Assembly: GCA_020891255.1 (NCBI GenBank)
Contig: BQFW01000009.1
Coordinates: forward strand, 1,240,001-1,304,000
Direction: 5' to 3'
Length of the DNA: 64,000 nucleotides
Origin: Entomortierella parvispora E1425
Lineage: Eukaryota > Fungi > Mortierellomycota
Numbering within the stretch: position 1 is the stretch's first letter; each line of letters starts with the position of its first letter. This document shows positions 1 to 56,708 of this stretch, piece after piece. A program made the translations under genes and the position numbers. The notes below the pieces were generated by a model that searched no databases, had not been told where the DNA came from, and saw nothing but the letters and a program-made list of their open reading frames with translations.

Positions 1-3000
1 GTCAAAGTTCATATCATCCCGGCATCAAACGATCCATGATGATACCCAGCAGCAGCTCAAATCAACGCTTCCGTTCAGCTTTCACCATTCCAGAATTGGC
101 GCTCAAAACGCCTTGCCTTTTGCAACCACGGAGTCCAAGAACTCACCCGTCCAACAAAAGAGGCAAGCTCTGTCCCCTCAAGCGGTTTCCCGTTTACTTT
201 CGGTCTTTGCGGATTGCAGCATGGTCTTGTTCGACCAAGGGAACAAATCTCTACAGAATTTAGGCCTGGTTTTCAAATCAGAGAACTGGCTCAGTTTATG
301 GATTCAACATGCTAGACTTCAAGACGCTTTGTGCTGGGCGAACCGACTACTGGAGATTGACCCGGAGGTCCTTGTAGCAAACGAGGAGTTGTTTCTTGAA
401 ATTTGGTTCAGGACGATGGGAGCACCCACTTCGGAGCTAACACTTCAACATCGGTTCATGAGGGCCATCATGCGATTTCTCAACAACGAAAAACCATCAG
501 CTCCTCTCCTCTTTTCCAATTCGGATGCGCTCTTGTCTATTACCCTCTTTCGCGATTTACCCTTGGCGTTCTTGGATGATACAGTCACGGATGGAAAGAA
601 AGCGACCATCTCTTTTACAGTGGACGTCAATCAAAGCCTGATAGAGTCTTCTCGTGACAAAAACCTGAGCCAGGAGTTCAAAGAATCACGACTTCAGGTG
701 TTGAGCAAAGTTCTCAGTAACATGGGAGAGCAGTACCTCATGTTGCGATCTGGCACCGGTACTGGAAACGTCCATAGGGCCTTGGCGATGAAAGGTCGCT
801 ATCAGATCTTCATTGGTCAACTTCTGCAGCAGGTGAAACAGGATTACGAGGTATGTATCCCATATCCTATATATCATGGCCTCTAGCGAGTGACAGGACT
901 TCAAAGCTGACAGCTTCTACAATGCCTGAAATCACTCTCTAGCGCCTAAACATCCAAAAGATGGTTCGAGATAGCAAGGCACATGTGGAGCTTGCCCATC
1001 ATGTTGTCGGCTGCGTCATTCAACATTGCGGACTCATTGTACAAAACACACCTCTGACGGGATCACAAGATAGTATTCTGGGCTACTTGACCTCGTCGCG
1101 TTTCTTCCCCCAGCCTCGATTGTAAGTCTGATAATTCCTTGTGTTGTTTTCTAAAATGAAAATCCCGATTCCTGTATTACCATCAACTTATTAACAATCA
1201 ACGACTTTTGATGTCGATTTAGGGACAGTGTCTATGTTCACCAAAAGATCCGCGGCTACGCGTTCTTGTACCATGCTGGGGAGAAGCAATTCTTCTCCGA
1301 GTTGATAGAATTGGCGCTGAACCAGCTACGACTCGTGGCAGGATCAAATTCTTTCAGATTTAATCTGTCTTGCGAATATTCAGGAACAGGCCTTGCGAAT
1401 GGCAGCACGTCTCTTGCGGTCGTTTCTAACAGCTCGGCTCTGGGGATTAGAGTGATGGATTGTCATCAATTAACCTATGGGCACTCGGATAATGTGGCGG
1501 ACGAGAGTTTGTCACCTTCGCCTGGAGCTCAGAATACGTCTCTCTCAACGGCCCACCCTGCATTCGGCGACCCGCTACCTCATGGACATCACGAAAAATC
1601 CGGTGCACCAGGATTGAAACCCACCATTCAAACCCTAGTCACCAATCAGGGTACCCGTATCAAAGAGCCATTGGAGATATCGCGCGATGCACTTTGGACG
1701 TTGACTAGCAGTCTGCGGAATGCAATTCTTGAAACCGATGACCGAAAGCAATGGTAAGCAGCCATTTTTTTTTTTTTTTTTGAACCTACGGGAATTTTGC
1801 TTCATTGTTGCACGGACAAATTGCTAAACACCAACGCCATTGCCCACTTAATATATGAATATGATAGGAGTATGGTTTTAAGTGGTTTCCGCTCATTGCT
1901 TCTTGCGGCTCTCTTTCGGCCCTTGTTGACGGCTTTTCTAGGTGAGCCTCCAGAGGAAGGGCACTGCTCCTCCCTTTTGCGCATTGGAAGAAGTCCACGA
2001 CAAAACATCACAGTTAGCAGTTCTCGCTGGTTTGCAACGGCGGGGCTGATTACAGTGGCTGTCCCAGCAGCTCGATGGCTAAAGTCGTTGGTGGAGGCTT
2101 TGTCCAACGATATCTCGCAATTGACGTCCCCTGGTCCCCAAACTAATGAGGGAGTGCCTATTGGAGAAGGCAACAGTGCAATGGCTGCCACCTCGCCCTT
2201 GTTGGCCTTCAAGACTTTTCAGAAGGAGACTTCAGTCATGTTTTTGCCCCTTTTGCAAAGTTTGAGCGGATGTTACGATGCTGTAGCCAGGACTCGACTA
2301 CTGGAGACGGCTAGGGAACTGCTGGCATCTCTTTCAGCTGCAGATAGAACACCTGTGGATTTCCAACAGCAGATTTCAGAGCAGGAAAGGATGGCTTGCC
2401 AGGGACTTTACCTCTTTGGTCAGCTCCTGCAGACCATCAAATCGATCGTGAAGGTGTCCAGGAAGACTCAGTTGCTGTATCCTGCATTTTGTACGTATTA
2501 CTGAATCCTCTGCTGCGCAATTCCGAGTTAACTCTGTACTAATTCAGCGCACTTTCATTTCCACTCAGACGATCGAAATAGGTCCTGGAGGGAAACGTTT
2601 CTAGAGCTATTACAAGTTGCTTTGGACCACAGTCTGGATATGATGATTACACTGGGCGGTCCAATTGAGGCGGACTTTCTACCCACCGAGGATGATCAAG
2701 GCTACCAAGTACAGGCGGATGTCGCTCTTGCTTTGGGACAATCAGAAAGCATACAGTGGGATTCTGAAAACAGGATACCTGGAGTTGAAGATGTGGCATC
2801 GCTTGAGTCTGCATTCAGTGAGTTTCTTTCTAGTCACTCTCAGTCTGTCGCCATGGAATCGGCTGTCCGGAAGGAATTGTTTTCACGGCTTGGACATCCT
2901 CAAGGCTGGGCTGGAGATATCATGTCGGAGGCAGGACTGGACAGTGCGATGATGGAGGATCCTGATCAGGGTCTTGACGGAGAGAGAGTTGATGAACACC

Positions 3001-3413
3001 GCCGTGCTCCTTTTCTGCCAAAGGCTTCTCCAAGTTCTCGAATGAGGAGACTGCAATGGATCCTATGGACCTTTTTGAGCTCGCATCTCGATTTCTGTCA
3101 GGCTATCTCGACTTTGGATCCCCGGTTCCATCGTCAAGTCCAAAAATCACTCTCGGTCTTGTTGAAGCCGCCTCCACCGTTGCCTTCGCCTCTGGAGAGG
3201 GCCCCCTCCGTGTCCTTGGAGAGCTCGGTCTGGTTTGACTTGGCCCATTCTGCTCGCGACTCTGGCGGACAGGGATCAAACCCCCTCTCGTCCTGGGGAT
3301 TGTTGGGCCAATGCTTGGGCAAGGAGTGGAATTTGTTTTTGATGTCCCTGGGTGAGACGGGACAGCAGTATGGTGGTGGGGAGTGGGAGAAAGAAGGCGA
3401 CGTCTTTGTGTAA
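1..3413 (+). CDS. MMS22: Mus7/MMS22-family replication-repair protein, C-terminal part (5' end outside window; ~5 exons)
   Basis: Frame is open from position 2. GT-AG introns at ~851-941, ~1123-1220, ~1754-1867 and ~2491-2568 join the ORFs. The spliced peptide LEIWFRTM...LQHRFMRAI...EFKESRLQVLSKVLSNM...YQIFIGQLLQQVKQDYERL...HVELAHHVVGCVIQH...FFPQPRLDSVYVHQKIRGY matches the fungal Mus7/MMS22 C-terminal pattern as I recall it (recognition from memory, not a search). Confidence 0.72.
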
Positions 3414-3957
3414 AGTAGATCCTTGTAATATAGAAAATAAAGCCGTCGACCCATCACATGAGAGAGAATACACGGTCCTTGTAAGAGGTACGCCATGGTC
3501 ACGATCGATTTTTTTGGTCTTGTTGTTGATTTGCTATGATCCTTTTCGACGGAAGTTGTTGGCGACCGGGCACTGGATGTCATTCCAGTGGTGTAACTGT
3601 AGGCGGGGAAATCTCGAAGTTCATTGTCCGTGTGGCGAATCAACATGTTTCTCATGAAAAAAGCACGCACAGACCACATCTCCGGATCGCCAAAAAAAAA
3701 AAAAAAAAAAAAAAAAATCAGCATGCTGATAGCTTTGGAGAGAGGGCGGGAGCAGATTATGTGAAGAGTCAGCCCTGTGCGCACGTCTTCCTCTCCCTTC
3801 CGTCTCCTCAAGGATTCAAAGAGGAGTATTTATCCCGCTCTCATATTCTATTTAGCATTTCTTTCACTGTTTTTCATCAGTTTCCTTTTCTACCCGCTCT
3901 CCTTTTATGTCATTATCCTGTGCATGCCATTCTCATGATCAGTCAAGTTGTACCAAT

Positions 3958-5760
3958 TTGGCGCCGTATGAACCGACTGAACGAAGCATCTGCGATAGAC
4001 GGAAGGAAATTCTTCTTGCGATCGTAAATGTTGCGTTGAATGGCATGTGGGGGATCGAGCGAATGGATCTATGGACTGTCAGTTTTTTGACGAGTTGGGT
4101 GAAAAACATGGATCTTTGATATCACGAGGCGGATCGATTCTCCAAGATGAGAGGATCTAAATGCACTTCGCCTCAAGTGAAAGGGAAGGCTTTTTACTAG
4201 TCGACATTGCTGTTCAAAGATGTGTGGGCCAGCATCTTGGCGCCATGTGGACCGGATCGAACGAAGCATCTGCGATCGAAAGAAGAAAAGAAATTCTTCT
4301 TGCGATCGCAGATGTTGCGATGAGTGAGTGACCCAGCAAAGAACTGATGGATCTATGGACGGTCAGTTTTTTGACGAGTTGGGCAGAAATCGTGAATCCT
4401 TGATTTTACGATACGGATCGATGCATCTCGTCAAGAGGACCAAAGCCCACTTGGTTTCAGGTGAAAGGGATGACTTTTTACTAATCGACATTGCTGCTCA
4501 AAGAACTGATTGTCGTCGTATATATGAACCGACTGAACGAAGCATCTGCGATAGAAGGAAGGAAATTCTTCTTGCGATCGCAGATGTTGCGATGAGTGAG
4601 TAACCCTGCAAAGAACTGATGGATCTATGGACGGTCAGTTTTTTGACAAGTTGGGCAAAAATCGCGAATCTTTGATTTCTCAACATGGATCGATGCTTCT
4701 CCGCAAGCGGAACAAAATCTACTTGGTCCAAGATGAAGGAAACTATCTTTTACTAGCTGACATTGAGGGCCGAACATCCTGCGCTTAGAACAGAAATGTC
4801 GACTAACGAAGCATGGTAGCTTTCATCTTGGACAAAGTAGATTTTGTTCCGCTCGCGGAGAAGCATCGATCCATGTTGAGAAATCAAAGATTCGCGATTT
4901 TTGCCCAACTCGTCAAAAAACTGACCGTCCATAGATCCATCAGTTCTTTGAAGGGTTACTCACTCATCGCAACATCTGCGATCGCAAGAAGAATTTCCTT
5001 CCTTCTATCGCAGATGCTTCGTTCATATATACGACGACAATCAGTTCTTTGAGCAGCAATGTCGACTAGCAAAAAGTCATCCCTTTCACCTGAAACCAAG
5101 TAGGCTTTGGTCCTCTCGACGAGATGCATCGATCCGTGTCGTAAAATCAAGGATTCACGATTTCTGCCCAACTCGTCAAAAAACTGACCGTCCATAGATC
5201 CATCAGTTCTTTGCTGGGTCACTCACTCATCGCAACATCTGCGATCGCAAGAAGAATTTCTTTTCTTCTTTCGATCGCAGATGCTTCGTTCGATCTGGTC
5301 CACATGGCGCCAAGATGCTGGCCCGCACATCTTTGAACAGCAATGTCGACTAGTAAAAAGCCTTCCCTTTCACTTGAGGCCAAGTGCATTTTGATCCTCT
5401 CATCTTGGAGAATCTTGGAGAATCGATTCGCCTCCTGATATCAAGGATCCATGTTTTTCACCCAACTCGTCAAAAAACTGACAGTCCATAGATCCATTCG
5501 CTCGATCCTCCACATGCCATTCAACGCAACATTTACGATCGCAAGAAGAATTTCCTTCCGTCTATCGCAGATGCTTCGTTCGGTCGGTCCATGTGGCTCC
5601 AGTCTGGACTTGGCCCAGCAAACCTTCGAACAGCAATGTCGACTAATAAAAAGTCATCCCCTTCACCTGAAACCAAATGGGCTTTGCTCCTCTCGCCGAG
5701 AAAAATCGATCCATGTCGTGAAATCAAGGATTTGCGAGTTTTTGCCCAACTCGTCAAAAA
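3958..5760. repeat. Mirror-symmetric (foldback) array of ~280-bp units: 3 units, ~30-nt loop, 3 inverted units plus a partial 4th
   Basis: Left units start at ~3958, ~4237 and ~4524 and share GAACGAAGCATCTGCGAT...TTCTTCTTGCGATCG...GGATCTATGGAC..TCAGTTTTTTGAC.AGTTGGG...TCGACATTGCTG. The reverse complements run from ~4796 to 5760. Unit 2 versus its mirror: 5 substitutions in ~195 bp by manual comparison. Confidence 0.95.
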
Positions 5761-5922
5761 AAAAAAAAAAAAAAAAAAAGCAATCCATATATCACCAAAG
5801 GTTGTTCAAGCACCACAGAACCTGCGTGCGCACAGACAGGAGAGCAAGACTTGGGGGGGGTTTTTTTTTTTGGTTTTTTTTTTATATAAGTTGTTGGGCT
5901 ATTACATGTATTGAAATAAATT

Positions 5923-7356
5923 CTAAAGAATATATGCAACGGCAGCAGCGACCAATCCAAACACTGTGATCTTGGACACTGCAGCGTGGCCGGCGCCGCC
6001 GGTTTTTGACGCGCCAGTAGGGGCAGACACGGCGCCAGAACCGCTGGAAGTTCCGCTGGGAGTACTTCCGCTGATCTGAGGCGCCTGGACGTTGGTGGTC
6101 GAGCCGTTCATGCTGATAGCCACGGTACCTTGGATGGGGTAAACAAAGCTCTCCTCCCAGTAAGGCTGAGCAATGTCGTTACAAGCGGTAGCGGGCATCG
6201 TCTGGAATTCCTTCTGGATGGTGGGCAACCAGAACTCGGCCAGAGTGATGGTCGAGTTGGACAATTCGTGCTCAAGAACGACGTGGCCGACCTTGGTATC
6301 GTTGCCCTTGGCGCGGTTCTCGAGCCATCCTGCAACGGTCGCGTTGGCCTGGGAGTAAGGGAGGGTACCACCGGGCACGAGATCACCAGGGATCTGCCAG
6401 TCGTTGGTATCCAAGTCCCACATGATGTTACGCAAACCCATCTGCCAGGCAATGGATCGGACACGGTCATCAACATCACCATATGGAGGACGCCAGCATC
6501 GGGGGGTGATACCGAGCACTTGCTTGATCATCTTGAGTCCATAATAAAACTCAGCAACGACCTGGGCGTTCGTCAGTCGCGTCATGTAGGGGTGGGACCA
6601 GGTGTGGACGCAAATGGTATGACCATCATTGAGACCACGCTGGGCAGCATCTGGAGCACCCACGATTCTGGAACCGTAGTACATCAAGTTGGCCTTTTGG
6701 TCGTTGTGAGCCAACAAATAGTTGTACAAGTTGGGCTCTGCCCACTTTTCGTTTTCGGGGGTGACAGGGAAGTAGTACATTGGGCCGTCGTCGTAGGTCA
6801 ATCCCCAGGTTCCTTCCTTAGGACAGTTGGAAATGTCTGGTGGGATATAGTCCACTTTGGGGGTCACACAGCCGTTGTAAGTCCTAAAAACAAATAAAAA
6901 CAAATAAAAAAAAGTTATCAGCACCAGATTTCTTGGATCAATTGGTCCAAGATGGGATAAAGATCACACTGCACAAGGACAATACCACCAACAGTAAGGA
7001 TCGCTTGGACTGTATGTCGTCATGGTTGTCTCGGTTGTGGGGGCGACATTGGGAACCTTAGTCCAGTCAATGGTTTTCATGACAGCAACGATTTGGGGGT
7101 CAGTGGCAGCATCAGTGACAATCTGAAAAGTTGCAGGGTATCCGGTCGTCAAGTCGAGAGCGGCGGCGGTTGTTGGCAATGGGCCAGAAGGCACAGCTCC
7201 AGTTTGGGGCCATGATTTGATGACGCCAGAAGGGAGGGGGATGTCTGCGAGCCAAGCAGGGGAGGTTTGGGGGAGGTAACCGGTCGTTGGAGTGGCGGCG
7301 TTGGTGGTCGCTGCAAAAAAGAGAACAGCCAAGGCTGCTGACAGTTTCAGGGTCAT
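5923..7356 (-). CDS. Chitin deacetylase (CE4/NodB domain), signal peptide, Ser/Thr/Gly tail and hydrophobic GPI-type C-terminus
   Basis: Signal peptide MTLKLSAALAVLFFAATTNA (ATG 7356). One GT-AG intron (~6885-6986) restores CWW-TYNGC. CE4 motifs TYDDGP, HTWSHPYMT, RPPYGD, WDLDTNDW and VVLEHE. C-terminus VFGLVAAAVAYIL. Confidence 0.93.
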
Positions 7357-15811: not shown

Positions 15812-19723
<3,912 letters not shown>

Positions 19724-24223: not shown

Positions 24224-27200
24224 TTAGCGGCCAACCATCTCCTCAGTACCGCGACGCCATCTCTCCTCTGGTCGGAGGGTCCCGTTTTTGTGGTTCAGAT
24301 ATAAACTATTATTTACATATACTTGCACTCTTGGAGATGCGCCAGGTGCCGTCAAGGTCGCTGTTGTCATAGAGGAAGTCGGCGCAGAGGAGTGCAATAT
24401 TGATGACGGCGATGCAGCAGACGTTGTCCTTGCCCCGCTTGGTTCTAATGAACCACTCTGAGTGCCACCACTGCCGCCAAAACCATCAGTACGATAGGCA
24501 TTTAAAGAAGTCAAAGAAGTTGTTGACGACGATGGTACGGAGGGCGTAATGAAATCAGCCATACCACTGCTCGCCCTGAATCCTGGCATTTCCATTGATG
24601 ATGAGGACGACGTGGTCGTCACCAAACTCGGAAGGGCAGGCGCGCTTGCATTCGGCGGCAGAGTGGTGCCAGGATAGGGTGATCCTGCCAAGTTGAAGTG
24701 CTCAAATCCATTGTTCTCATGACTAGTCCTGAAACTAGACCGATTTCCGATCGATTGAGGCACTACTCCACTTCCACTGCTTCCTGACAGCCCGTTGGAT
24801 GGCATAGCTGGAATAGATTGATATGGATGCTGTTGAATTTGCTGAACTGAAGGAGGGGGGACATAGGTTGTCCCCGGGTATCGTGACATTGGCTCTGGAT
24901 CTCGTCGCATGGGCTGTGCTTGTTGAGATGCAGACGTCATATTCCGCTGAAGGTATTGTTGCTGAAGATTTTGTTGCTGTTGTTCAAGCTGCAGCAGCTC
25001 CAGTCGGCGGTGTTGTGTTGTGATGGATGAACCATTAGCACGTCGGGTATGATGAGTGATCGGCTCGTTGGGCTGAGGCTGCAGAGGAGGTGCTCTGTTA
25101 ATGAAAGTGGCTGCAGGCTGTCGAGCTGAAGTCTGTTGGACCTGACTCGACCTGCTACCATTTGGAGCCAACTGAAAAGACGATTGCCTTTGCTGTTGTT
25201 GTTGTTGCTGCTGATAGTAATCCTCTGATCCCGATCTTGTTACTGTAGTAGTATTCGCTGTCATTTCTCCTTGAGAGTGGTACTGAGTGAGTCCTTGCTG
25301 ATAGTCCTGGAATCCTTCCACTGATCTTGAGATAAAAGACGTATTACGATGAGGCGCGCCACTGTTGGAGTCGTTCCCGCGAGCCGTGCTAATGACAGGG
25401 TCCACGGGCACTGGTAACTGCATCGTAGGTCTATAGCCACCCAAGCCTGAATCACTACCTACTGTTGCTGGACGAGTGGTGGCTAAGTGCGAGGCCACTC
25501 CGGAATGGAAGGCAGTCATCTCTTGCCCGTATTGTTCGAGCTCTCGCTCCCACTCCCGCTCCCTCCTCAAAAGATCCGACATTTCTGTCATAACTCGCCT
25601 TCGCCTCGAATGCTCGGGTCCATAGCGATTGCGAACGTTGCCGTAGATGTAGTATAATCCTCCTTGGCTGAATTGCTGTTGCTGATGTGGCTGTCCAGAG
25701 TTTGGTTGGAGGATTCCCAAAGAAGGTTGACCGCGTCGAAGCGAGACCGTCTCTAGATCTTTGTCATCTGATTCCTGTAGGGACCGATGTCTATTGGGCT
25801 CATCGCAATCATCATCACTCCAGCTCTCGCCATTCGGATTTGTAACCCATGATGATTTCAGCGATTGGTATCGGTGATTATCAGCGAGCAGGCTGTCTGC
25901 TTCTGAAATATGTTCAACGCCTTCGAACACAGTCCCAGAACTCACAACACGAGACCTTCCATGGCCTCGGATCACGTCGCCTCCATTCCATCGGTTCCGA
26001 TCAAGGGTCGTCCTTCGTAAACGCCTCCTTTGTTCCCGTGCACCAAGCCAGTCTGGATCATCCTCCTGTTCGTCAAAGTTGCCTTGCGATGTGACCGAAG
26101 AAGCAGAAGAGGATCCATAGGATTCGCTGCTGCTGCTTTCAATGGGGTTGCCGTTGCAGTCCAAGATCTCTGCAAAAGTAGGGCAATGAACTGGATAAAA
26201 CTGAGGCAATATAGGGGCATCCCTACCACGAGCAGATGAGCGGTCCTCTGCAGCCTCTATTGAGTCCGTTTCTTGTCCAACTTCAGCTTGTCCATCATCC
26301 AGGGAGCCTGCAAGACTTGTCCCTCGACTGCCTCCAGTATGGTTGATCATGCTTCTTGTATCTGCTGGATGAGCTCGGTTCCATGGTGGGCGGTCTGCGT
26401 AGCCCATGGACGAATCTCTCTCACTCAACAGGCGAAGCAACCGAGTGAGGCGTGCTTGACGGATCCGAGAAGCCATGGACAGGATCGAAGAGTCAAACCC
26501 AGGACGATTGGAGGCAAGTAAAGAGAAATCAAGAGGCTCTTCTGACAATGGGAGGACTGTCTGAGAATCAGATAGAAGTGGCCCCAAAAGACCGAGCCTG
26601 TCCGTAAGCGTAGCATTCATGGTGGGAGGGGACTCTATCTCGCTGTGCAGAGTGATGGGGGCATCCACAGTGACATCCAGCAATTGTCCAGAGAAGGTAT
26701 CCTCTGAGTTGGTATCCTCAGCTGTCGCATCCATCCTTATGGCGCCAACCCCGTCACTCAGTGTATCCTCATCTACTGACACTCTACTGCTGAGCTGTCC
26801 CGTAGGCAAGGGTCGAGAGAAGAGGGGAAGAGGTAAGGGGGCATCCATTGGTGTGTCTAGATTGGGAGAAACAGTGGTAGGGTTTTGATCGGGAGTACTG
26901 TCGACAAGAAGCTCGTGGCCAACCAGCTGAGAAGAAGTGGCATCTTGGTTGGAAGGAGGGACTTCGGAGGCGACATCATCCAAAAGATATTCGCCATGCT
27001 GGACGACTACTCCGTCCGCCGCTGTCTCACCCTCGGCGTTGTTCAGAGCAATAACATCTGGATGGCGCAACCAATCATCTGAAGATACTGATCCAGAGGA
27101 GTAGTCTCTCGTGGCGTATCTTCTACGGGGAATGGCACCTCTGGGCAGCATGACCAGATTATCGACGGACAACGAGAGTGTTCGTCCTGAGATGGCATAG

Positions 27201-28663
27201 GGATGTGTTTGCGGCAACAATGGTGAGGTTGCAGATATGGTATTGGTGTCCAGGGTCGATAACATGGGCTCTGCTTCGCTTTCAGCATGACTGGGTGCTA
27301 CTGTGTGATCAAACGATTGGCTCATAGTGGCATCTTGGAAGGATGTCAAAACTTGGGACAGGGCCAAGCGACTAGCGGGGTAAGTGCTGTGCTGCTCCAT
27401 GGTCTCGAACATTGGTTGCTGATACTGGAAGTTTGGACTGTCGCCTTGGAAGCCTTGGCCATTTATACCATCAGACTGACCATGGTTATGGAGGATGTGG
27501 TCTAGAGATGCTCCCATGCTACTGCTGTAGTCAAAATCTTGGCGCGACGGGGTTCTGGGCGCATGCAATGATGTGAGCACCATGTCTGACGCTGATGACG
27601 GAGAGTGGTCCTGGTGAATTGTTAGGGGTTGGGCCAGCAACAAGTGACTGAGTCTCGATGGTAGAGAGCTGTCAAGTCTTTGATCTAGAGCGCGGCCCTC
27701 GTCCGTTTGGTCATCGGCACTCAAAGACAAGTCAGTCTGATCTGCATGAAACGGGTCTGGAGCGCTGGGCATTGAAGGCCCGAGCGCAGGGGGAGAGTTC
27801 GAAGCAGAGATTGCAACGGAGGCTGATGCAGCCGCGGCAAGAGCGGTCAACGCAGAAACACTTCCGGGAGCATCGGTCGAACCCTCTGCTGTTATCGTTG
27901 TTGCAGTTTCCGATCCCATACTCTGTTCCGCAGATGTGGTCAGATCGCCAAATTCAAGGTTGTGCAATTGGAGAAAATCACCGACGATCGTCGAAGTTGA
28001 CCCCCCTGCTTGGCGATGCCCCTGAGTCAGCTGCGATGGCTGAGCATCAACTGAAGGAGTTATTGCGGTGGTCAGTCTGGAAGGCAAGGTAGATGAGATA
28101 TGAGGTGTCGGTGTGTCCATTGTCGAAGACTCTTGTCGGTTTGTAAACTCTGCAGGTGCGAGCTGATGCTGATCCTGTTGTGGCAGAGACTGATGCTGCA
28201 CATGGAACTGCTGATGAAGATGCTGCTGCTGTTGTTGATGAAGCTGTAGAAGCTGCTGTTCCTGCCGTTCACGAATGGCCAAAAGCAAAGATTCATGTAG
28301 ATCCAAGGAGCTGTTGGAGAAGGAACTGGAGTATGAGGGGTAAATGGGCGTATATGATAGGTGCTCATGCTCGTCCCGACTGCTACTTAAACTGCTGCTC
28401 TGGGTTGCTGTGCTGATGCTGATTGTGTTGCGGTTGGCAGGGTTATTAATGAGGACGCTGTTACTGGGCAGGGGATCGAATCCGACCTCTGCACCATTGA
28501 AGGCTGGTGGTCTACGTTGATCCCCTTCATTGGCCTCGGCCCGTCCTGACGGGATGTCCCCAGATGCGGTCTGGCCAAAGGACACAAACGAAGATGAGGC
28601 TGATGAAGAGGCTGAAGGGACAGTGGATGCAAAAGAAGTCAAGAACGGGGTCCTGGAGGGCAT
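24224..28663 (-). CDS. Large intronless low-complexity (Ser/Gln/Thr/Pro-rich) hypothetical protein, 1479 aa
   Basis: 4.4-kb uninterrupted ORF starting ATG (MPSRTPFL), with poly-Q and poly-S tracts. No domain recognised. Confidence 0.85.
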   Translation of the reverse strand: MPSRTPFLTSFASTVPSASSSASSSFVSFGQTASGDIPSGRAEANEGDQRRPPAFNGAEVGFDPLPSNSVLINNPANRNTISISTATQSSSLSSSRDEHEHLSYTPIYPSYSSSFSNSSLDLHESLLLAIRERQEQQLLQLHQQQQQHLHQQFHVQHQSLPQQDQHQLAPAEFTNRQESSTMDTPTPHISSTLPSRLTTAITPSVDAQPSQLTQGHRQAGGSTSTIVGDFLQLHNLEFGDLTTSAEQSMGSETATTITAEGSTDAPGSVSALTALAAAASASVAISASNSPPALGPSMPSAPDPFHADQTDLSLSADDQTDEGRALDQRLDSSLPSRLSHLLLAQPLTIHQDHSPSSASDMVLTSLHAPRTPSRQDFDYSSSMGASLDHILHNHGQSDGINGQGFQGDSPNFQYQQPMFETMEQHSTYPASRLALSQVLTSFQDATMSQSFDHTVAPSHAESEAEPMLSTLDTNTISATSPLLPQTHPYAISGRTLSLSVDNLVMLPRGAIPRRRYATRDYSSGSVSSDDWLRHPDVIALNNAEGETAADGVVVQHGEYLLDDVASEVPPSNQDATSSQLVGHELLVDSTPDQNPTTVSPNLDTPMDAPLPLPLFSRPLPTGQLSSRVSVDEDTLSDGVGAIRMDATAEDTNSEDTFSGQLLDVTVDAPITLHSEIESPPTMNATLTDRLGLLGPLLSDSQTVLPLSEEPLDFSLLASNRPGFDSSILSMASRIRQARLTRLLRLLSERDSSMGYADRPPWNRAHPADTRSMINHTGGSRGTSLAGSLDDGQAEVGQETDSIEAAEDRSSARGRDAPILPQFYPVHCPTFAEILDCNGNPIESSSSESYGSSSASSVTSQGNFDEQEDDPDWLGAREQRRRLRRTTLDRNRWNGGDVIRGHGRSRVVSSGTVFEGVEHISEADSLLADNHRYQSLKSSWVTNPNGESWSDDDCDEPNRHRSLQESDDKDLETVSLRRGQPSLGILQPNSGQPHQQQQFSQGGLYYIYGNVRNRYGPEHSRRRRVMTEMSDLLRREREWERELEQYGQEMTAFHSGVASHLATTRPATVGSDSGLGGYRPTMQLPVPVDPVISTARGNDSNSGAPHRNTSFISRSVEGFQDYQQGLTQYHSQGEMTANTTTVTRSGSEDYYQQQQQQQQRQSSFQLAPNGSRSSQVQQTSARQPAATFINRAPPLQPQPNEPITHHTRRANGSSITTQHRRLELLQLEQQQQNLQQQYLQRNMTSASQQAQPMRRDPEPMSRYPGTTYVPPPSVQQIQQHPYQSIPAMPSNGLSGSSGSGVVPQSIGNRSSFRTSHENNGFEHFNLAGSPYPGTTLPPNASAPALPSLVTTTSSSSSMEMPGFRASSGMADFITPSVPSSSTTSLTSLNAYRTDGFGGSGGTQSGSLEPSGARTTSAASPSSILHSSAPTSSMTTATLTAPGASPRVQVYVNNSLYLNHKNGTLRPEERWRRGTEEMVGR

Positions 28664-46767: not shown

Positions 46768-49700
46768 ATGTCCTTGAGACGTCTTCATTCACGGAATGGC
46801 TCCCTTTCCGCCAACCCATTCGACCATGCGGAATCCTCACCCAACAGCAATGGCGAAGGTCGAAGCATCATCATTGTCAACAGCGACATTATGATTCTCC
46901 CTAGTGGACAACAGGAATCGCAGACAGAGGACGATGAAGACGACGACGAAGAGACCCTGTCCTCGTCAGGTCACAGTAGCGGTCGCCGGAGCATGGCCGC
47001 CGCACTAGCGCCAGTACCTGAGCCAGTGCCTGAGCCAGTACCTGTACCTGCAAAGGATCCATACCTCCCTTCTTCATCCACCATGGCTTCATACACGCTA
47101 ACAACGACGCCTTCGTCGCTGCAGTCCGCACCGAGTATTGTACCAGAGCCCTTTTATGCCTATCAGCCACCAAAGGACCTCGTAACCTCTGCACCTTACT
47201 CCTCGCTCTCGACTGCCAACGCGACCATCCCTGCTACAACCCACAGAACTGTCCCGGGCTCGCCCACCTCACAATACCCGGACGACACCGCGCCCATGTA
47301 TCGTTCGGTGAGTAACGAAGCTACTCGGACTCAACAGCCTCAGCCCAATCTCTCTTTTCCCGCCCAGCCTCACGATCCAATCATCTCCAATGGGCAACAG
47401 CCGCAACTTGAGCCACAACTCTACCAAAAACAGACGCAGGAAGCACACGCGCGGTCCTCACCCCGTTTTAGCAACGACTATTCTGCCGACCTAGAAATGC
47501 AGGATCGTGCCAGGACGTCGCCAAAGAGGACGAGCTCTCGCGAAAGAGGAAGTCAGGCTCTGGCTGGCGATGCATCCTTGAGCTCAAGCCGGACCGTACC
47601 TGTTTCTTCCCAGACCAACAATGGATCCTCGTCTGACACAACAAGGGCCGCAAAGGCCCTGGCCATTTCGGAGGACTTGCGCAACAACAAAAGCGTGCAA
47701 GAGCGTGGCCCAGGTCGCACAAACAATCAAAAACAGCATCATCCCACCTCTCACAACGACAACAACAACGACGACGACAAGAGCAGAAACTCAAAACAAA
47801 GGTCAAGCGGGTTTTTTGCCGGATTGTTCTCTTCTGGTAAGAACAGTCGTCGTCGTTCAGGTGGCGTGGCAGCGTTGATGGGTGCAACGTCAGAGCCACA
47901 AAGTGCATCCGGGAGCAAGAACGACTTGATTGATCCACGGTCGCAACTTCCTCATCACCACCACCACTTGAGGAACGACATGGTGCCAGAAAAGGGAGCG
48001 GGCAAATCGGGTGTCCCAGGAAAGAACGGCGAGGCACCAGAAACGGATCTGTTCAAGTATGTCGGGATCATGCTGGACCTGCCCGAGGACCCAACATGGC
48101 GTGAGATCGGGATCAAGATGCTCAAGGTCCTTGCGGTCATGACTGTGTCGTACTTTGCCCTGATGGCCCTTTATTTCGGAGCAGAGGTAATTTCCGTCGG
48201 CTCTGATGTTTATTTGGTTTTTTTCAATCGAAAACCATACGCGCGTGGTGCGTGTTTGTGTGTGGGGCGGGAGATTGCAAAAGAGTACAATGTTTTGGAA
48301 ATGAGATGCCACATGGTAGAGCGCGTCCTGTTCGTGTTTCTGCCTATTGTGTCCACCCTCCCCTTCACTCGCCAAACTGAACAGAGAGCAGGCTGTTGCC
48401 CCTGTCACTCTGGGTCAATGAAAACCCTTCGCTAATCTGTAATATGCCCTGTACTCCCTATTGACAACTCTAACAGTTCCAATCAAACAACCGTATGAAC
48501 AACTTCAATGTTCTTGTCGTCGACCTCGACCTGAGTATGATTGGTGCACAGTTCGTCAACTTCACCCAGCTCTCGAATGGCCAGCCGGGACAACTCAACT
48601 GGTCGATCCAGCCATACACAACGTATCCCAACCTCTCCGTCATCATGGACGCCGTCAATAGCGGAAAGTACTGGGGCGCTGTCGTAATCCAGCCTGGAGC
48701 ATCCTCAACCCTCAACCAAGCCTTCGTAACTCCGTTACCTGATTATGACCCATCCAAGGCATTCGCGTTTGTCTACGATGGAGGCAGGGATCCATTGGTG
48801 GTCAAGCCCTACATCGTCTCCACCATGTACACCCAATTCTTGCAGTTCTCAAAAATTTTTAATCCTGCCTGGATCAAGGTGGCGTTGATGACGGCGGAAC
48901 AGTACAATATCACTCTTTCAGATCTCACCCTGGCTCCACAAGTCCTCGGAACGCCTATCGCCTTTGAAGAGTTTGATCTGCATCCTCCCACTGCCTCTAT
49001 CATCACCTCTGCGACAACGGTGGCGTATATTTGGATCTTTTTGATCGCCGGTGGCAGCACTTACCTGGTGGCGCACATGATCCAACCCCTGACCAAGAAC
49101 GCGACCGTGGTCAAGACGGTAGTATCTCTATTGGGACCTTTGCTCGGCTTCTTGATCTCGCTTTCGATGGCATACAGTCTCTTGCTATTGGCCTTTGGAG
49201 TCCCGTTCAGTTCCGGCGGCCAGTTCCTGTCATTGTTTGGAGGGATGTTGATCCTACAGTGTGCAGTGGCGTCGATGGTGATCTTCTTGATCTACCTGAT
49301 TCCAGTGGTCTTTATCCCATCGGTTACGATTACATTTGTAATCATGAACGTGATTGCGGTCTTTAACCCAGTCGAGTTGATGCCGGGCTTTTATCGGTGG
49401 GTCTACGCGATGCCGTTCCTGAACGCGGTCCAGGTCGCGCGTTATGTGCTCATGGGCTCCTATGATCGACTAAAGTACAATATCCCGATTCTGGCCATTT
49501 GGGTCGTGATTCCGCTTCTGCTCTTGCCTGTTGCCATCAGGAGACAAAAGAGGTTGGCAAGCGAGTTGCAGATTGAGGAACAAGAGCTAGAGCAGTTGAA
49601 TCACGAACAGCAGCAACGGCGACTCAAGCTCCAGCTTGAGCAAGACAATGATGTTGCTAATGACGATGACGAACGGAAGGGTAGGGCGGAGCAACCAGAG

Positions 49701-50566: not shown

Positions 50567-53500
50567 CTATGCCTTGGTCTTGTTTCTGATGGTGACATGT
50601 GCACCCCAGTGGTTGTCTTGGATGATCTGGGCCAGTCGCTGAAAATCTTTGTTGGTCGAAAGGGAGTTTGTCACAATGACGAGCCTATGGGCCCTGCGAC
50701 CTTGGTTAGCGATCTGGCGGAGATAGACCACGATCAAGTCAATCTCTTGAGGACCCAGGTTGGTAAACGAAAGATCCAACCATTCCAGCCAACCCCAATT
50801 CAGGGCCTCAAAAACGGCCTTCCAGCCCGAGACCAGGACGCGTCTCGTCGTGCCCGTCCCCTTGGCCGCCGGCGCCGACTTTTGCCGATGACTGAGCGAA
50901 GAGGGACGAAGGGGAGGAGAAGGGGCCCGTGGGTCTGTGGGCTCATCCGCCCAATAGGACTTTGGCTTGAAATCGGACAAGCCGACCGCTGTCAACGTGT
51001 TTCGAAACTCGGTCAAGATTGAGACCAAGTCTTTGACTCTGTGCGTGGATTGGATATGGGTGCAGTCCAAGAGCAACTCCTTCAGAGGAGCGTCGTTCTT
51101 GCGCTTCTTGCGGTTCTCGGCCACTTCGAGTAGGCCCTTGAGCCAGCTGTCATCGGTGGTGTTCTGGAGGTCGATGATAGGGATGGAACGGCAGCTGGGT
51201 GTCGCAAGGAGGGTTGGCCACGGGAGTTCGGCCTTGGTCAGGGCGCGGTGGACGAGCTCGATGGACCGGAACTCGGCCGTGGCACGGAGGACTTCGACCC
51301 GAAGCGCTATATTCTTGCAGCATCGGAACAAGACCATCAGTTTTTGGGGTGGAGTGCGGGCGGGAGGAGGTGCGGAGGAAGACGGGGGCAAGCACAACGT
51401 GGCGCCTGCAGTCTCGAGGGCCAAGATCCTTTTCAGGATGGCGAGCTGGGCCCGACAGAGCTCTGGAGGGGTCCTCAGAATCACGCGTTCCAACCGCGTC
51501 AGTCGACGAAAGAGCTCCTGCACTCGACCTATGTGAGGGTGACTGAAGCTGTCGAGCTGGAAGGTGATCTCGAGGTCTTTGAGATGGGAGAGATCCTTGG
51601 GGAGATGCAACTCTGGCTGCAGCAGAAAATCGGAAAAATGCCGGAGCATCAAATGCGTCAACCGTTTGTTCTGCATCAGTCGCATTGCAAAGTCGCCGTC
51701 GTTGACGTTGCCGATGGTGGGTCGGTAAATGACCAGCTCGCTGATGTAGGAGCGTTCAAGAGCCAGGGCCAATTCTTCCATGTCGGCGCGGTTAAAGTCC
51801 CATTTGAGCTGCAGGTCGAGAAGATCGACGGCCTTTGGATTCGTACGGAGGAGGGCGTAAAACTCTTTTGCGTCGACCCGTGTGTGGAGATAAACGTCAA
51901 CATCCCGGTCGCCGCTACCGTTGATCTTTCCGTTCTTTTTGATATACTTGAAAAGTGCCTGTTGACTGTTATCGAGACGCAACTTTTTTCTTGAGGATCC
52001 CTCCTCATCACCGTGCGATCGAGGGGACGAAGAGCTGGAATATCCAGACGACGAAGAATTGGAGGAAGGCGCTTTGGAAGACGACGATGATGACGACGAC
52101 GACGATGTTGATGGCGATGAAGCAGAGGCACTCGGCGCGGGTGACGAAGACGAGTCTGAGGGGAGTCGTGGTCTCTTTCTGGAATATTTAGGACTGTTGA
52201 TAGTTTCGGCATTGTCTTCCTCTAGTTCCTGGTCCCCTGATTCCCGGCCTTCCTTTGGTTCTGGGACATCTTGCGGTTCCTTGACACCCTCTGATGCTTG
52301 ATCTTCTTCCTCGTCCACGTCCCCAAAGTCAATCTCTTGAACGCTCCTGTCATCGTCATCATCGTTGCAGTCTGTGATATGGATCTCAGGCAACGCTGGC
52401 CGATCAGAGACTTGGCTACCCGCTGGGCCTTCCCTGTTTCTCTTGAGGTTCTTTCCATCTGCGGGCTCATCTTTGCGGGCTTCAGCTCCTCGCTTCTTGG
52501 TCAGTTTCAAGTCCACAGGTGCCAGGGCATCCTTGCTACCACTCGCATGGCTCTTGGAGGTCGATACTTGAGCCGAGGAGACGTCGGTGGCACCCCCTAC
52601 GGCTGTCGACTCTTTGATCGCGATACGTTTTTGTAGAGCCCTCGCCACGGCGGACTTGGGGCCTGGCTGCCTGCGCTGCGGGGTATTTGGCTTTTCTGGC
52701 GGGCGCACGAGAATGCGAGAGGGCTGATGATCTTTCTTCTTGCCACCCTGATTGTCCTCGTTGCCATCGCTGTCGTCGTCATGGCCGCTCTTGTGCTCGC
52801 TGTGGTCGTTCTCGACTTTAGATTGCTCATCCGCATTGTCAGGAGTACTGACGGTCGCGGTGGTGGTAGCTGTAGCAGGCAAACCGAGCTCATGGTGGCG
52901 CGCTTTGAACCGTTTTTGACCCTTGACAAAGTCCGTTTGGTAATCGTACCAGACTGTCAGCCAGTTCTCGAGCCAGTCGGGCATCACCTCCACGGCATTG
53001 ATTTTCCGAGTCAGATCCTCTGTACTGGCCTCAATGTCTTTTCGGAGTCGCTGCACATGTGCGTCCATGGCTTGAAGGACTTGGTCATTGTGGGTGTTGA
53101 TCAGCAGCGGCAGTTGGTTCATATGGGCTTCCATTTGTTGTCGGTGTCGATCCTGCCTCAACATGAGTTCTTGTTGAAGCTGTGCGCGATCGGAATTTAG
53201 CTCTTGTCGAAATCGTGCCCAAAAAGAGTCGGGTATCTCTGCTTCCGTGGGCCAGTGGCGCGTCGACGATGGGGGTGTCTGCATGGAATAGGGTGCCGGC
53301 TTTGGGATCAGCCCTGGAACTGGTTGTGGAAGTGGAGATGATCTTGAGCCTTTTCGTACGTGTGGCCCTTCGGTGGGCAATGGGCCAGGTGCGCAGTGAT
53401 AGTTGGGGTGGTGCCCATCGAAGCTGGCTCTGTGGTCATTGGCAGGCTGTTGAGAAAAAGGGTAGGTGGTGTGCATGCCCGTTGGGGATTGGACTGGAAA

Positions 53501-54083
53501 TGGGGTCACGCATGGTGCCCAACAACTCTCTGTGGTGTTCATATCTGATCACCACAGGCCGCGAGATCTGGGGAGAAGTGTGGACAGCAGCGGGGACACT
53601 CGGTCGTTTAGGAGCTCCTACTCTATTACCTTCTTCCGGTCCTGCTTCTACTTCGACCTTTATCTCTGTGTCCGTCGTCTGTATCGTAGTTTCTGTAGTT
53701 ACCAATAAACCCCCCGCTTCAGTTGGACAAAGACAGACTGTTTCTTCCATATGCCTCACTTCAGGAATGTCTTGTTCAATCACTTGGATCATAATTCTTT
53801 GATGAGCATGAATCCAACTGCCTGGATGGAACGCGTTTTCGTGAGCGGAAGCGTGATGAACCCGCACTCGGCGGTCGTTGAGGACAAGATAAAGGGCATT
53901 GGGAAAGGCCGTGAGGATGGTTTGCATCTTGACGTAAGGAGTTGGTCCGTCGGTCTCTAGAGAATCTTCAATTGGGAGGTCATGGAATTCGGTTGCGAGG
54001 CTGGCGGCATCGACGCGTAAGAAACGTTGTTTCCCAGGAATGAAATCCCTAGGCTGGCCTCCAGTCGTGGACCCGAGGCTCAT
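50567..54083 (-). CDS. Lineage-type RNI/LRR-like protein with N-terminal header domain, coiled coil and acidic/Ser-rich linker (junction between ORFs 53436-54083 and 50567-53542 unresolved)
   Basis: C-terminal half YIKKNGK...DAKEFYALL...DLLDLQLKWD..ADMEELALAL...LTHLMLRHF...LKDLEI...LEWLDLSFTNL shows RNI-like leucine periodicity. The two ORFs are in different frames; a candidate 85-nt GTAATA...ATCAG intron would join them. Confidence 0.65.
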
Positions 54084-54547: not shown

Positions 54548-56708
54548 TTATTGAAAGAAAAGGCGAAGCGTGTCCATGTGGCGAAATCGAGCCCGCAAGT
54601 TCCTTTCAATCTCGCCATCGTCTTTGGGGATACTCATACCCAATTGCAGTTTTTGAAGGTGGGGTCGTTCGCCATTGATCCAGCTCACGTCATGCAGTTC
54701 CTTGTCTAGAGCTATCTCGGGAGTTGCAGGGGTTTCCAGCTTTTCACCACCACCGTCATCGACGGCCTCTAGATCAATACTTGTCTTAGATTGCTGTGGA
54801 GGATCGGGGCATCGGCCCAGCCCTCTAAAAAGAAGATCCACATCCGAGACGCTGCCATCCAGCATCCAGAAATCCGTCAATCTGGGGCAGCAGTGCAGAA
54901 ACAGATTGACATCCAAAATGAAAGCTTCGGATGCTATGTTTCTCAGCCAGTATCCTTGTAGCCGCAATGATCGCAGGTGGAATACAAAGCTGACTTTGAT
55001 TCGGATGTTTTGTCGCAAGACAGAGAGATATGCCTCTGATGAATACAACCTCACAATGTCCTCTTCCTCAGTGTCTTCTCCTGACTCAATGTCACCGAGA
55101 TCACCTTCGTCCGCTGGAGCAGTACTCTGCTCCTTGTCATCCCCCAGCAGACCCGCTTCTCTTTCCAATGAAGACATATCGTTCCTAACATCCAGTATGA
55201 TGGCTCGAATAATCGTTGTCCGATGGAAAAGACTCAGGCTCTTGATTTCGTCACAGCAGGGCTTCATCAAGTACTGGGCCCAAATACGGTCGCTCTCCTT
55301 GTCCACGGATGGATTCCAGTCTGCATGGCTCAAGATCGTGAGCCGTTGCAGTCGTAAACTTGAGGGGAACTTTAGTGAAAGCGCCGTCTGAAGCCCATCC
55401 ACATGACCACCCTCTAGAAAGAGATTGTCAAAGCACTGTGGCATTGGAAGCTCATTCAGCGGAGCCAGATCCGTAAGAGTCTCCAGACGAATCTTTTGAT
55501 TAGGGGAGCGCAGTCGCAAGTACTTTAGAAAAGGGAATGGCGTTCGTTTGAATTCATCGTCTTCCTGATCTGCCCCGCTCCTGGTCCTGTTGCTACTTCC
55601 TGTGAAAGAGTACCCCTGATCATCTTTGCTCAAGGGCCAGTGTTTGACATTGTTCGTACTGGCTACATCGGTCTGTTGCCAGAACGGGGTGATGTTGTAG
55701 ACTGACAACTCTTCGATCTGTGGAAAAGTCTTTACGACTCTTTTTGCCAGCTCATCCCCGATCAGACAACGAAAGCCCAGTATCTTGAGGCTCGTGATTT
55801 CTGGCCCTTCTTGATCAAGATTGTCGCCGACGACCAGGACCGATATCCGGTTAAGCCATAGCTCCTTTAGATTCGGGGCCCCCGATACCAGAAACTGAAC
55901 CAGAGATTCCCAGCTGATGACAAAGTTTTGCTTGTGGGGCGCAGATATATCCAACAGCCCGAGTTGAGGGAAGATTGGCAATGACATGGGCGAGACGGGT
56001 GTTGCAGCATTGACCAAGCGGGCCAAGACGGGGTGCCGTTGCAGATGAAAGGCAAAGTCGGGTGTAATCTCCACCGTTTGTTTCGAGAGCGAATCCAGTA
56101 CGGTGGCGAGATTGACCGGTTCTATAGGGACATCTTCGGGTGGAAGAAATCGCAGGTACAAAAGTTTGAGTCCAGTGGCGGGGACAGAGGACTGCATTAG
56201 ATGGTTATCGAGCAGGTGCGGGTTGCTGTCGAACAAGCGTGTTGACAGACTTAGCTGTGCAATGGCCTTTGTTAGCGATTCATGGTCCCCGTTTTGCAAC
56301 ATAGCAAGAACATTGTCCTTGAACGCCTCGGTGACGGCCTCCTTCATGTCGTTCCAGTTCTCTTCCCAGGCAAAGGCCAAGCGCAATACCGTCAGGTTGG
56401 GACATTCCCGAAGGGCTCGCCTGAGGGACACGGCCTCGGTCATGCAGAGAGGGGTCTTGTCAGAGCCTCAGGATTCGAAGATTGGCTCGCTTGAACTCGT
56501 AAAGAGGATCCTGGTCAGCGTCTTGAAAGCATTCTGTCATACTAATAAGCTCACCACCGAGCCAGCGAGCAGGGGAGACGGCCCGGTTGATGGTCCTGCA
56601 GACACACCTCAGAGAGAGGATGTTGTCTCTTGTAAGGTAGCTGATAATGACATCAGCAAGCTCTGGGACGGAGAAGACGCGAAAGAGAGACTGGGTAGCC
56701 GGGGACAT
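54548..56708 (-). CDS. F-box plus LRR-like protein (junction between ORFs 56460-56708 and 54548-56443 unresolved)
   Basis: N-terminal VFSVPELADVIISYLTRDNILSLRCVCRTIN is F-box-like. Downstream repeats CPNLTVLRL, FPQLGLLDI, APNLKELWL, FPQIEELSV, CPRLTDFWM and PHLQKLQL. Confidence 0.7.

Follow-up and report, generated by a model that had tools for sequence, protein, structure and literature searches.

A palindrome in Entomortierella parvispora as the best-preserved member of an old foldback-type repeat family, with arms probably homogenised by arm-to-arm copying

The window analysed here is a 64,000-nt stretch of contig 9 (positions 1,240,001-1,304,000) in the Entomortierella parvispora E1425 genome, which comprises 38.9 Mb in 20 contigs. 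Within it, a palindromic element sits between two convergent genes, both of which face it with their 3' ends. The left neighbour is a predicted Mms22/Mus7-like gene on the forward strand (113-3413), recognised by a PF09462 match on the ORF at 113-886 together with the ORF list. The right neighbour, on the reverse strand (5923-7355), is the chitin-deacetylase-like gene EMPS_07043. It contains a NodB domain (PF01522), a signal peptide, a GPI-like tail, and one intron at ~6885-7000, and its predicted protein is 100% identical to EMPS_07043 of Entomortierella parvispora.

The palindrome spans 3959-5601 and is composed, in each arm, of three diverged units of ~280 bp disposed around an asymmetric centre of ~30 nt. 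A repeat search recovered three long inverted pairs that together tile this interval: 4136-4529 with 5021-5414 (394 nt, 98% identity), 4534-4764 with 4795-5025 (231 nt, 94%, arms 30 nt apart), and 3959-4148 with 5412-5601 (190 nt, 95%). An earlier reading made from the letters alone (the sequence-only reading) had proposed three units mirrored by three, a ~30-nt loop, and a partial fourth unit with poly-A, and had suggested a self-comparison as a check. BLAST of the region against its own reverse complement gave a single alignment over 3959-5601 with its midpoint at 4780, and the proposed architecture was recovered in each of its parts, including a right-hand half unit with a run of 24 A residues (A24). 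The array was not reported by Tandem Repeats Finder at default settings; the units came from the inverted-repeat search and an HMM search.

The left arm contains units U1, U2, and U3 on the forward strand. U1, the outermost unit and of type 1, occupies 3958-4236, with an HMM match at 3958-4235 that covers unit positions 1-279. U2 (4237-4523) contains the best copy of the module-A hairpin, with 26-nt arms at 4262-4287 and 4294-4319, and the innermost unit U3 (4524-4766) is cut short at unit position ~256. The centre itself (4767-4795) corresponds to the longer tail of U3', for which U3 has no counterpart. In the right arm, on the reverse strand, both unit alignment and the HMM delimit the innermost unit U3' (4796-5026) and U2' (5027-5313), the latter 98% identical to U2. 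These are followed by U1' (5314-5602), which carries a 10-bp tandem duplication at ~5405-5424 that is absent from U1. A U1-specific 27-mer occurs exactly twice, at 4024-4050 on the forward strand and at 5510-5536 on the reverse strand, against a chance expectation of 0; the earlier observation that U1 and U1' share a sequence found in no other unit was therefore correct, with one occurrence per arm. Only the right arm continues outwards, into a half unit on the reverse strand (U0', 5603-5795) that consists of the core only; homology places it at 5603-5761, with unit homology to about 5790 and a probable extent to ~5795. The A24 run within it (5757-5780) is an expansion of the unit's own T6/A6 run, and a related copy on contig 6 is expanded at the same unit position. 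The left arm ends exactly on a unit boundary, without a counterpart of the right half unit.

We compared the units by cutting the region at the unit coordinates of the sequence-only reading and aligning every pair. Mirror partners were 95.3% (U1/U1'), 97.9% (U2/U2'), and 92.7% (U3/U3') identical, whereas all pairs of neighbouring units in the window copy were 80-86% identical. This agrees with the earlier claim that each unit is closer to its mirror partner than to its neighbours (93-98% vs 80-86%). U2 and U2' differ by six substitutions over 287 bp, where five in ~195 bp had been counted before. Over the whole length of the arms we counted 42 substitutions, 26 of them transitions, and three indel events of 10, 9, and 2 bp. 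The central ~85 bp holds 20 of the 42 substitutions, and the remaining ~770 aligned bases of the arms are ~97% identical. As had been proposed, no coding frame survives: ORFs contained entirely within the element reach at most 91 aa, and Pfam gave no match for those that overlap it.

Nanopore 1D reads include fold-back chimeras, and a palindrome of this kind might in principle be an assembly artefact produced by such chimeric reads. The assembly was indeed built on Nanopore 1D reads, but at 409x coverage and with Illumina polishing, both of which argue against this explanation (PMC8759367). Moreover, the palindrome lies 1.24 Mb inside a 1.88-Mb contig with unique genes on both sides, its arms differ by the substitutions and indels described above, its centre is asymmetric, and an additional half unit is present on one side only. 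Eleven further foldback loci in the same genome share its design and are older. An artefact thus has a negligible probability and is effectively refuted for the window palindrome, in accordance with the sequence-only reading, which had dismissed it on the basis of arm-specific differences; the unique flanks and the older paralogous foldbacks lead to the same conclusion.

That reading had also called for a BLAST search of the genome with one unit to establish copy number and orientation. With U2 as the query, 65 matches were obtained at ~15 loci across the whole genome, and a motif scan added one more locus beyond the U2 matches. An HMM census, whose profile represents a conserved core of 178 nt at unit positions ~100-278, counted 66 cores at 16 loci on eight contigs, and two other subfamily queries (L038 and L040) detected no further loci. 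Foldbacks of one polarity ('+..+ -..-'), in which the 3' ends of the units point towards each other, account for 12 of the 16 loci; the remaining four are fragments with a single arm or a single unit. At the other foldback loci the arms are 66-90% identical, such that the window copy is by far the best kept. The elements range from 0.6 to 1.8 kb and their subrepeats from 160 to 290 bp, with 3 to 3.5 units of 243-289 bp per arm in the window, and no copy has any coding capacity. Five of the 16 loci cluster within the first 525 kb of contig 1. A candidate 5-kb palindrome seeded by a foldback and surrounding another locus of the family (C1:439-453k) was considered and rejected, given that its 99.7% identical inverted 5.08-kb blocks are two opposed copies of a Ty3/Gypsy chromovirus-type retrotransposon.

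A full unit consists of a 5' module, i.e., a 25-bp imperfect hairpin followed by a variable stretch, and the core. Conservation within the core is uneven, with short blocks at 90% or more across every copy and the remainder at 60-75%. Among the 66 cores, the blocks at or above 90% include those around GACGAGTTGGG, GGATCGAT, and GTCGACATTGCTG, as well as TTTTGACGAGTTGGG.

The centre of the foldback bears on how the family began. In the ten loci annotated with the full-unit HMM, orientation switches at unit positions ~252-269. The centre at 4767-4795 of the window has homologues in eight other loci, and it is asymmetric in all nine. At this junction, one inner unit breaks off directly behind GACATTG; a short GGCC-rich stretch comes next, and the inverted unit then begins with its longer tail. 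Since independent fold-backs would not recreate an identical asymmetric junction, the foldback arose once. The shared junction demonstrates that the founder of the family was already a foldback. Two inverted stacks of subrepeats around a short asymmetric centre formed a single time and were then copied to other chromosomes. The sequence-only reading had offered an uncharacterised foldback family as one possibility, and this is upheld by the unit at 16 loci, the 12 foldbacks of one polarity, and the centre common to nine of them.

The age of the window copy can be assessed through its duplicate on contig 6 (locus L041). This copy abuts a relic of the deacetylase gene of the window, which comprises aa 258-294, aa 410-443, and the 3'UTR. 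The relic lies beside the outer half unit of L041 and consists of the last 34 codons, a separate piece of 37 codons, and the 3'UTR, at 83-90% DNA identity. The corresponding host flank in the window extends over 5796-6506 on the reverse strand and takes in the 3'UTR and, from the coding sequence, the C-terminal GPI-like tail (to ~6030) plus a further piece (6353-6506). Its matches to contig 6 are 83% over 155 nt and 89.6% over 154 nt, and besides contig 6 the window flank has no other match in the genome. The deacetylase tail is conserved in orthologues from other genera and is thus ancestral, which makes the window locus the parent, no younger than the contig-6 duplicate. Contig 6 holds a decayed copy of the gene end together with the foldback, and at least this copy event was a duplication at the DNA level in which the adjacent deacetylase gene contributed its 3' part. 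We also considered, and rejected, an association of the foldback with deacetylase genes as a family; the four closest paralogues (contigs 8, 2, and 5) are far from every locus of the repeat family.

The duplicate serves as a reference against which the arms can be measured. Units of the window and of contig 6 are 86-88% identical and the shared flank 83%. In both arms of both loci the unit types follow the same order from the centre outwards, namely type 3, type 2, and type 1. The co-duplicated relic of the neighbouring gene acts as an internal clock, and by this clock the structure is old and its arms look young. Freely diverging arms should differ at least as much as the two loci do; instead, the contig-6 copy is 12-20% diverged from the window and the divergence between the window arms is just ~3% once the central ~85 bp are set aside, and therefore the arms recombine and homogenise. 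The sequence-only reading had left open whether the whole block was simply inverted after its units diverged or whether the arms are homogenised against each other. Simple inversion is insufficient on its own, because the inverted architecture predates the contig-6 duplicate and homogenisation at a later time is needed.

Phylogenetic analysis agreed with this age comparison. In the core tree, mirror partners were sisters within a locus and fell inside unit-type clades common to several loci, with support of 100/98 for W_1p/W_6m and 100/95 for W_2p/W_5m in the window. The same mirror-sister pattern was observed in L041, L039, L040, L042, L044, and L056. In the full-unit tree, (U1,U1') was supported at 100/99 and (V1,V5') at 95/93, and the two pairs were joined at 100/99. 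AU tests, for which the clades were named after the first tree was seen, rejected all topologies that pair a U1-type unit of the window with one from contig 6 (p ≤ 5e-5). Of the two alternatives offered by the sequence-only reading, homogenisation of the arms is hence the one favoured by the mirror sisters in the trees, the AU tests, and the age of the contig-6 copy.

The orientation of the centre spoke directly for crossover between the arms. Relative to the deacetylase flank, the centre is in opposite orientations in the window and on contig 6. As an internal control, a trio of loci with a shared one-sided flank (L032/L033/L034) had the centre in the same orientation, without a flip. These results demonstrate that the arms of the window palindrome recombine, apparently by conversion with occasional crossover. 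The copying route could be intrachromosomal gene conversion or hairpin-templated repair between the inverted arms, and occasional crossovers between the arms would flip the centre. The window copy probably looks young only because its arms keep being copied onto each other. One qualification concerns whether conversion is ongoing: a one-time event at each locus, in which one arm was made anew from the other, could in principle mimic the pattern, though such an event would still be arm-to-arm copying. We conclude, with moderate confidence, that the structure belongs to an old and non-coding repeat family of foldback type, that it is the best-preserved copy of that family, and that its arms have been homogenised by arm-to-arm copying.

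A long inverted repeat could alternatively be maintained for the RNA that it encodes. Under such a model, read-through transcription coming from one or the other convergent gene would yield a predicted dsRNA of ~780 bp, from which Dicer would produce small RNAs able to silence the repeat family or modulate the genes on either side, and selection would keep the arms paired. The position between two convergent 3' ends and the fact that the arms resemble each other much more closely than would be predicted from the age of the locus are in line with this model, as is a folding prediction in which 1500 nt of the region, treated as single-stranded DNA, form one almost unbroken stem of -882 kcal/mol. 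However, the arms are decayed, to 66-90% identity, at the other 11 foldback loci, the unit hairpin lacks covariation, and the core has no consensus structure; the decay at the sister loci and the lack of covariation argue against selection for pairing. We therefore consider a maintained hairpin-RNA locus very unlikely. More generally, apart from being hairpin-prone DNA between convergent genes, the locus presumably serves no cellular purpose.

Searches for a structured RNA gene were also negative. Rfam gave only sub-threshold generic hairpin matches at the centre, with MIR8742 scoring 41 bits against a gathering score of 130, and ARAGORN detected no tRNA-like fold. The module-A hairpin was 87% paired in 27 distinct copies and showed no covariation beyond that of shuffled controls. 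RNAalifold returned 0 consensus pairs across 54 cores. With all four of these analyses negative, a structured RNA gene is unlikely.

The mode of spread was evaluated from the ends and flanks of the copies. Target-site duplications (TSDs), which the sequence-only reading had suggested looking for, were found neither in end alignments nor in a scan of seven two-ended loci at every offset for lengths of 3-9 bp, with the qualification that the copies are old, some anchors are imprecise, and decay is possible. The outer ends lie at unit position ~95-130 in most loci, without a single sharp terminus, and six of them run ~35 nt further, to a ATCACCTGA motif. No inverted pair of distant matches that might frame a transposase was observed; all matches to the unit and its motifs lie in compact arrays of at most 1.8 kb. 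Two loci, L037 and L038, share 92.7% identity that is coextensive with the element; their flanks are unrelated, and the left boundary is sharp. The sequence flanking L040 and L038 matches nothing elsewhere in the genome, and hence no empty-site paralogue was found for either. In two copy events, i.e., window/contig 6 and L032/L033/L034, a one-sided flank of host or non-unit sequence was carried along. Such one-sided flanks fit segmental duplication better than clean transposition.

These observations can be read in several ways. The family may be a classical non-autonomous cut-and-paste foldback transposon of the Galileo or FB type, with a candidate transposase binding motifs in the subrepeats and the window copy as a recent insertion whose arms, for that reason, have stayed similar. 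The long and internally repetitive inverted arms, the absence of coding sequence, and the dispersal over eight contigs all suit such an element, as do the coextensive similarity of L037 and L038 and the unique flanks of L038. In addition, the TTTTGACGAGTTGGG and GTCGACATTGCTG blocks, kept at 90% or more in 66 cores, behave as expected of repeated protein-binding sites. Nevertheless, the window copy cannot be recent, given that its contig-6 duplicate, with its piece of the neighbouring gene, is 12-20% diverged; further, no TSDs were found, no autonomous partner with these ends was found among the unit and motif matches, and the copy number is only 16. In this strict form, the transposon model is unlikely.

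At the other extreme, the element may never have been a transposon: a local tandem array would have folded back once and then spread by segmental duplication or by break-induced copying from the palindrome into one flank. The one-sided co-duplication of flanks in two independent groups would be expected from this, and so would the clustering at the start of contig 1 and the lack of both TSDs and a transposase. It is harder to reconcile with 16 loci on eight contigs, with homology that ends at the element and unique flanks at L037/L038, L040, and other loci, and with outer ends that in most loci occupy similar positions in the unit, a regularity not expected if duplication breakpoints were random. 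We regard this combined scenario as distinctly unlikely. It is likewise highly doubtful that the palindrome propagates itself without a transposase, in which case a break or stalled replication would lead to hairpin-primed or break-induced copying together with one flank, the arms would be re-symmetrised, and read-through would feed RNAi. Retroposition was considered on account of the long T/A runs at or near one end of several copies and the truncation of L038 at its other end, and was set aside: the run in the window and contig-6 copies is the expanded T6 of the unit itself, the other runs lie inside shared sequence, and no TSD was found. In our reading, the family is a relic non-autonomous foldback element that was also moved by ordinary segmental duplication. 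We infer that it began as a non-autonomous transposon whose partner transposase has been lost or is unrecognised.

The design of the family resembles that of known foldback elements. Drosophila Foldback-like elements have long, internally repetitive inverted arms and no coding capacity, and in Galileo the terminal 40 bp are nearly identical, the TSDs are 7 bp long, and the transposase belongs to the P superfamily (PMC2775673). In common with FB and Galileo/Newton/Kepler, the elements described here consist almost entirely of their long inverted arms, which are stacks of tandem subrepeats; most copies are non-coding, secondary structure is strong, and the two arms differ in subrepeat number. 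In the window the long inverted arms lie at 3959-4766 and 4796-5601, and the copies are non-coding and dispersed. In contrast, no counterpart of the termini, TSDs, or P-superfamily transposase of Galileo could be demonstrated in this family, whether as fixed-length TSDs at the seven two-ended loci or as a transposase-coding relative among the unit and motif matches. Compared with the Drosophila foldbacks, the subrepeats here are much longer (160-290 bp), with divergence into types that are specific to position; the sequences are not similar, and the host is fungal. By analogy of design, then, the family would work like elements of the FB/Galileo type, and membership of that group is unproven.

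The behaviour of the arms recalls a different class of structure. Mammalian sex-chromosome palindromes are reported to be conserved through gene conversion (PMC7023750). The window element shares with primate Y and willow sex-chromosome palindromes, and with inverted segmental duplications, inverted arms around a short unique spacer. As in gene-converting palindromes, arm identity is far above that expected from age, and the spacer can flip by arm-to-arm crossover; all three features, i.e., high-identity arms around a spacer, identity above age, and spacer inversion, were observed here. Sex-chromosome palindromes differ in that they carry genes and extend over tens of kilobases to megabases, whereas the arms here are 0.8 kb long and belong to a dispersed non-coding repeat in a family of 16 loci.

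Two other kinds of element were compared. Miniature inverted-repeat transposable elements (MITEs), e.g., mimp of Fusarium, are usually smaller than 0.8 kb, with short simple terminal inverted repeats (TIRs), defined TSDs, and tens to thousands of copies. The present family is similarly non-coding, flanked by inverted repeats, and intergenic near genes, but its elements measure 0.6-1.8 kb, their arms are stacks of subrepeats, and there are 16 loci with no TSD found; in size, TIRs, TSDs, and copy number it thus does not correspond to MITEs. Small-RNA loci that encode hairpin RNAs likewise consist of a long near-perfect inverted repeat that would give dsRNA if transcribed, and the present family differs from these in the decayed arms of its sister loci. 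The element is a combination of known kinds, namely a foldback-type repeat and a gene-converting palindrome, and not a new mechanism.

Searches for relatives beyond this genome were negative within their reach. A pattern scan of metagenomes with 22 specified bases, which has low sensitivity, gave nine matches, none of which fits the unit HMM. We found no paper in the literature that links foldback elements with Mortierella or Mortierellaceae. A foldback-type repeat such as that of Entomortierella parvispora has apparently not been described before in Mortierellaceae.

In this early-diverging fungus, the locus provides a clean and datable instance of a small palindrome whose arms have evolved in concert. 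One consequence for annotation is that, in this genome, arm identity is unusable for dating elements of this kind. Its long non-coding palindromes should be interpreted as structures that recombine, and not as recent insertions or assembly errors. Finally, the family adds a foldback-type repeat to those of Mortierellaceae and is a candidate source of hairpin RNA.

Every full unit of the family carries a 25-bp imperfect hairpin (in the window, for example, at 4262-4319), which we located at equivalent positions in 34 places across 11 loci. Its internal mismatches follow a fixed pattern and 87% of it is paired; compensatory changes do not exceed chance. The hairpin is conserved by descent.

Several family members have a T/A homopolymer run of 20-28 at, or close to, just one of their ends. 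Such runs were observed at window 5757-5780, at approximately 3033-3055 of the contig-6 locus L041, at approximately 2995-3015 of the family locus L038, and in the left flanks of two further loci, L056 and L042. The runs in the window and at the contig-6 locus are the unit's own T6 run in expanded form; those at the other loci may stem from target preference, slippage, or a tail. The same intergenic region of the window has further long homopolymer tracts outside the element: an A26 tract (3692-3717) and, in plus-strand reading, G8 and then several runs of T in the deacetylase 3'UTR (5846-5883).

The initial 525 kb of contig 1, which may be a repeat-rich chromosome region, contain five of the 16 family loci (at 132.6k, 276.5k, 395.0k, 444.7k, and 524.4k). 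The loci at 276k, 395k, and 445k have in common partial higher-order copies and a one-sided non-unit flank of 230-550 bp. Another contig-1 observation concerns a family locus flanked on both sides by oppositely oriented Ty3/Gypsy chromovirus-type LTR retrotransposons, at C1:439405-444480 (L045:5405-10000 plus L046:1-480, the stretches around this locus) and C1:447725-452801 (L046:3725-8801), a pair that imitates a giant palindrome. The copies, each approximately 5.1 kb and 99.7% identical to one another, look young; they encode reverse transcriptase, RNase H, integrase, chromodomain, protease, and zinc knuckle, and are accompanied by a 986-bp direct repeat, presumably the LTR.

Elsewhere in the window, five long ORFs of 555-1479 aa (16553-19723, 24224-28663, 46768-48435, 50567-53542, and 54548-56443) contained no Pfam domain at E <= 0.001. 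The chitin-deacetylase-like gene beside the window element, EMPS_07043, has a close paralogue at C5:1869869-1871148 (76% identity), whose six-frame match contains an in-frame TGA; this may reflect an intron or a broken gene. A decayed relic of EMPS_07043 itself adjoins the contig-6 foldback (L041:2652-3023; C6:1298652-1299023). What is left of the gene there is the 3'UTR plus aa 258-294 and aa 410-443; the intervening stretch has been deleted. This relic is an unannotated pseudogene fragment, and it gives a date for the duplication.
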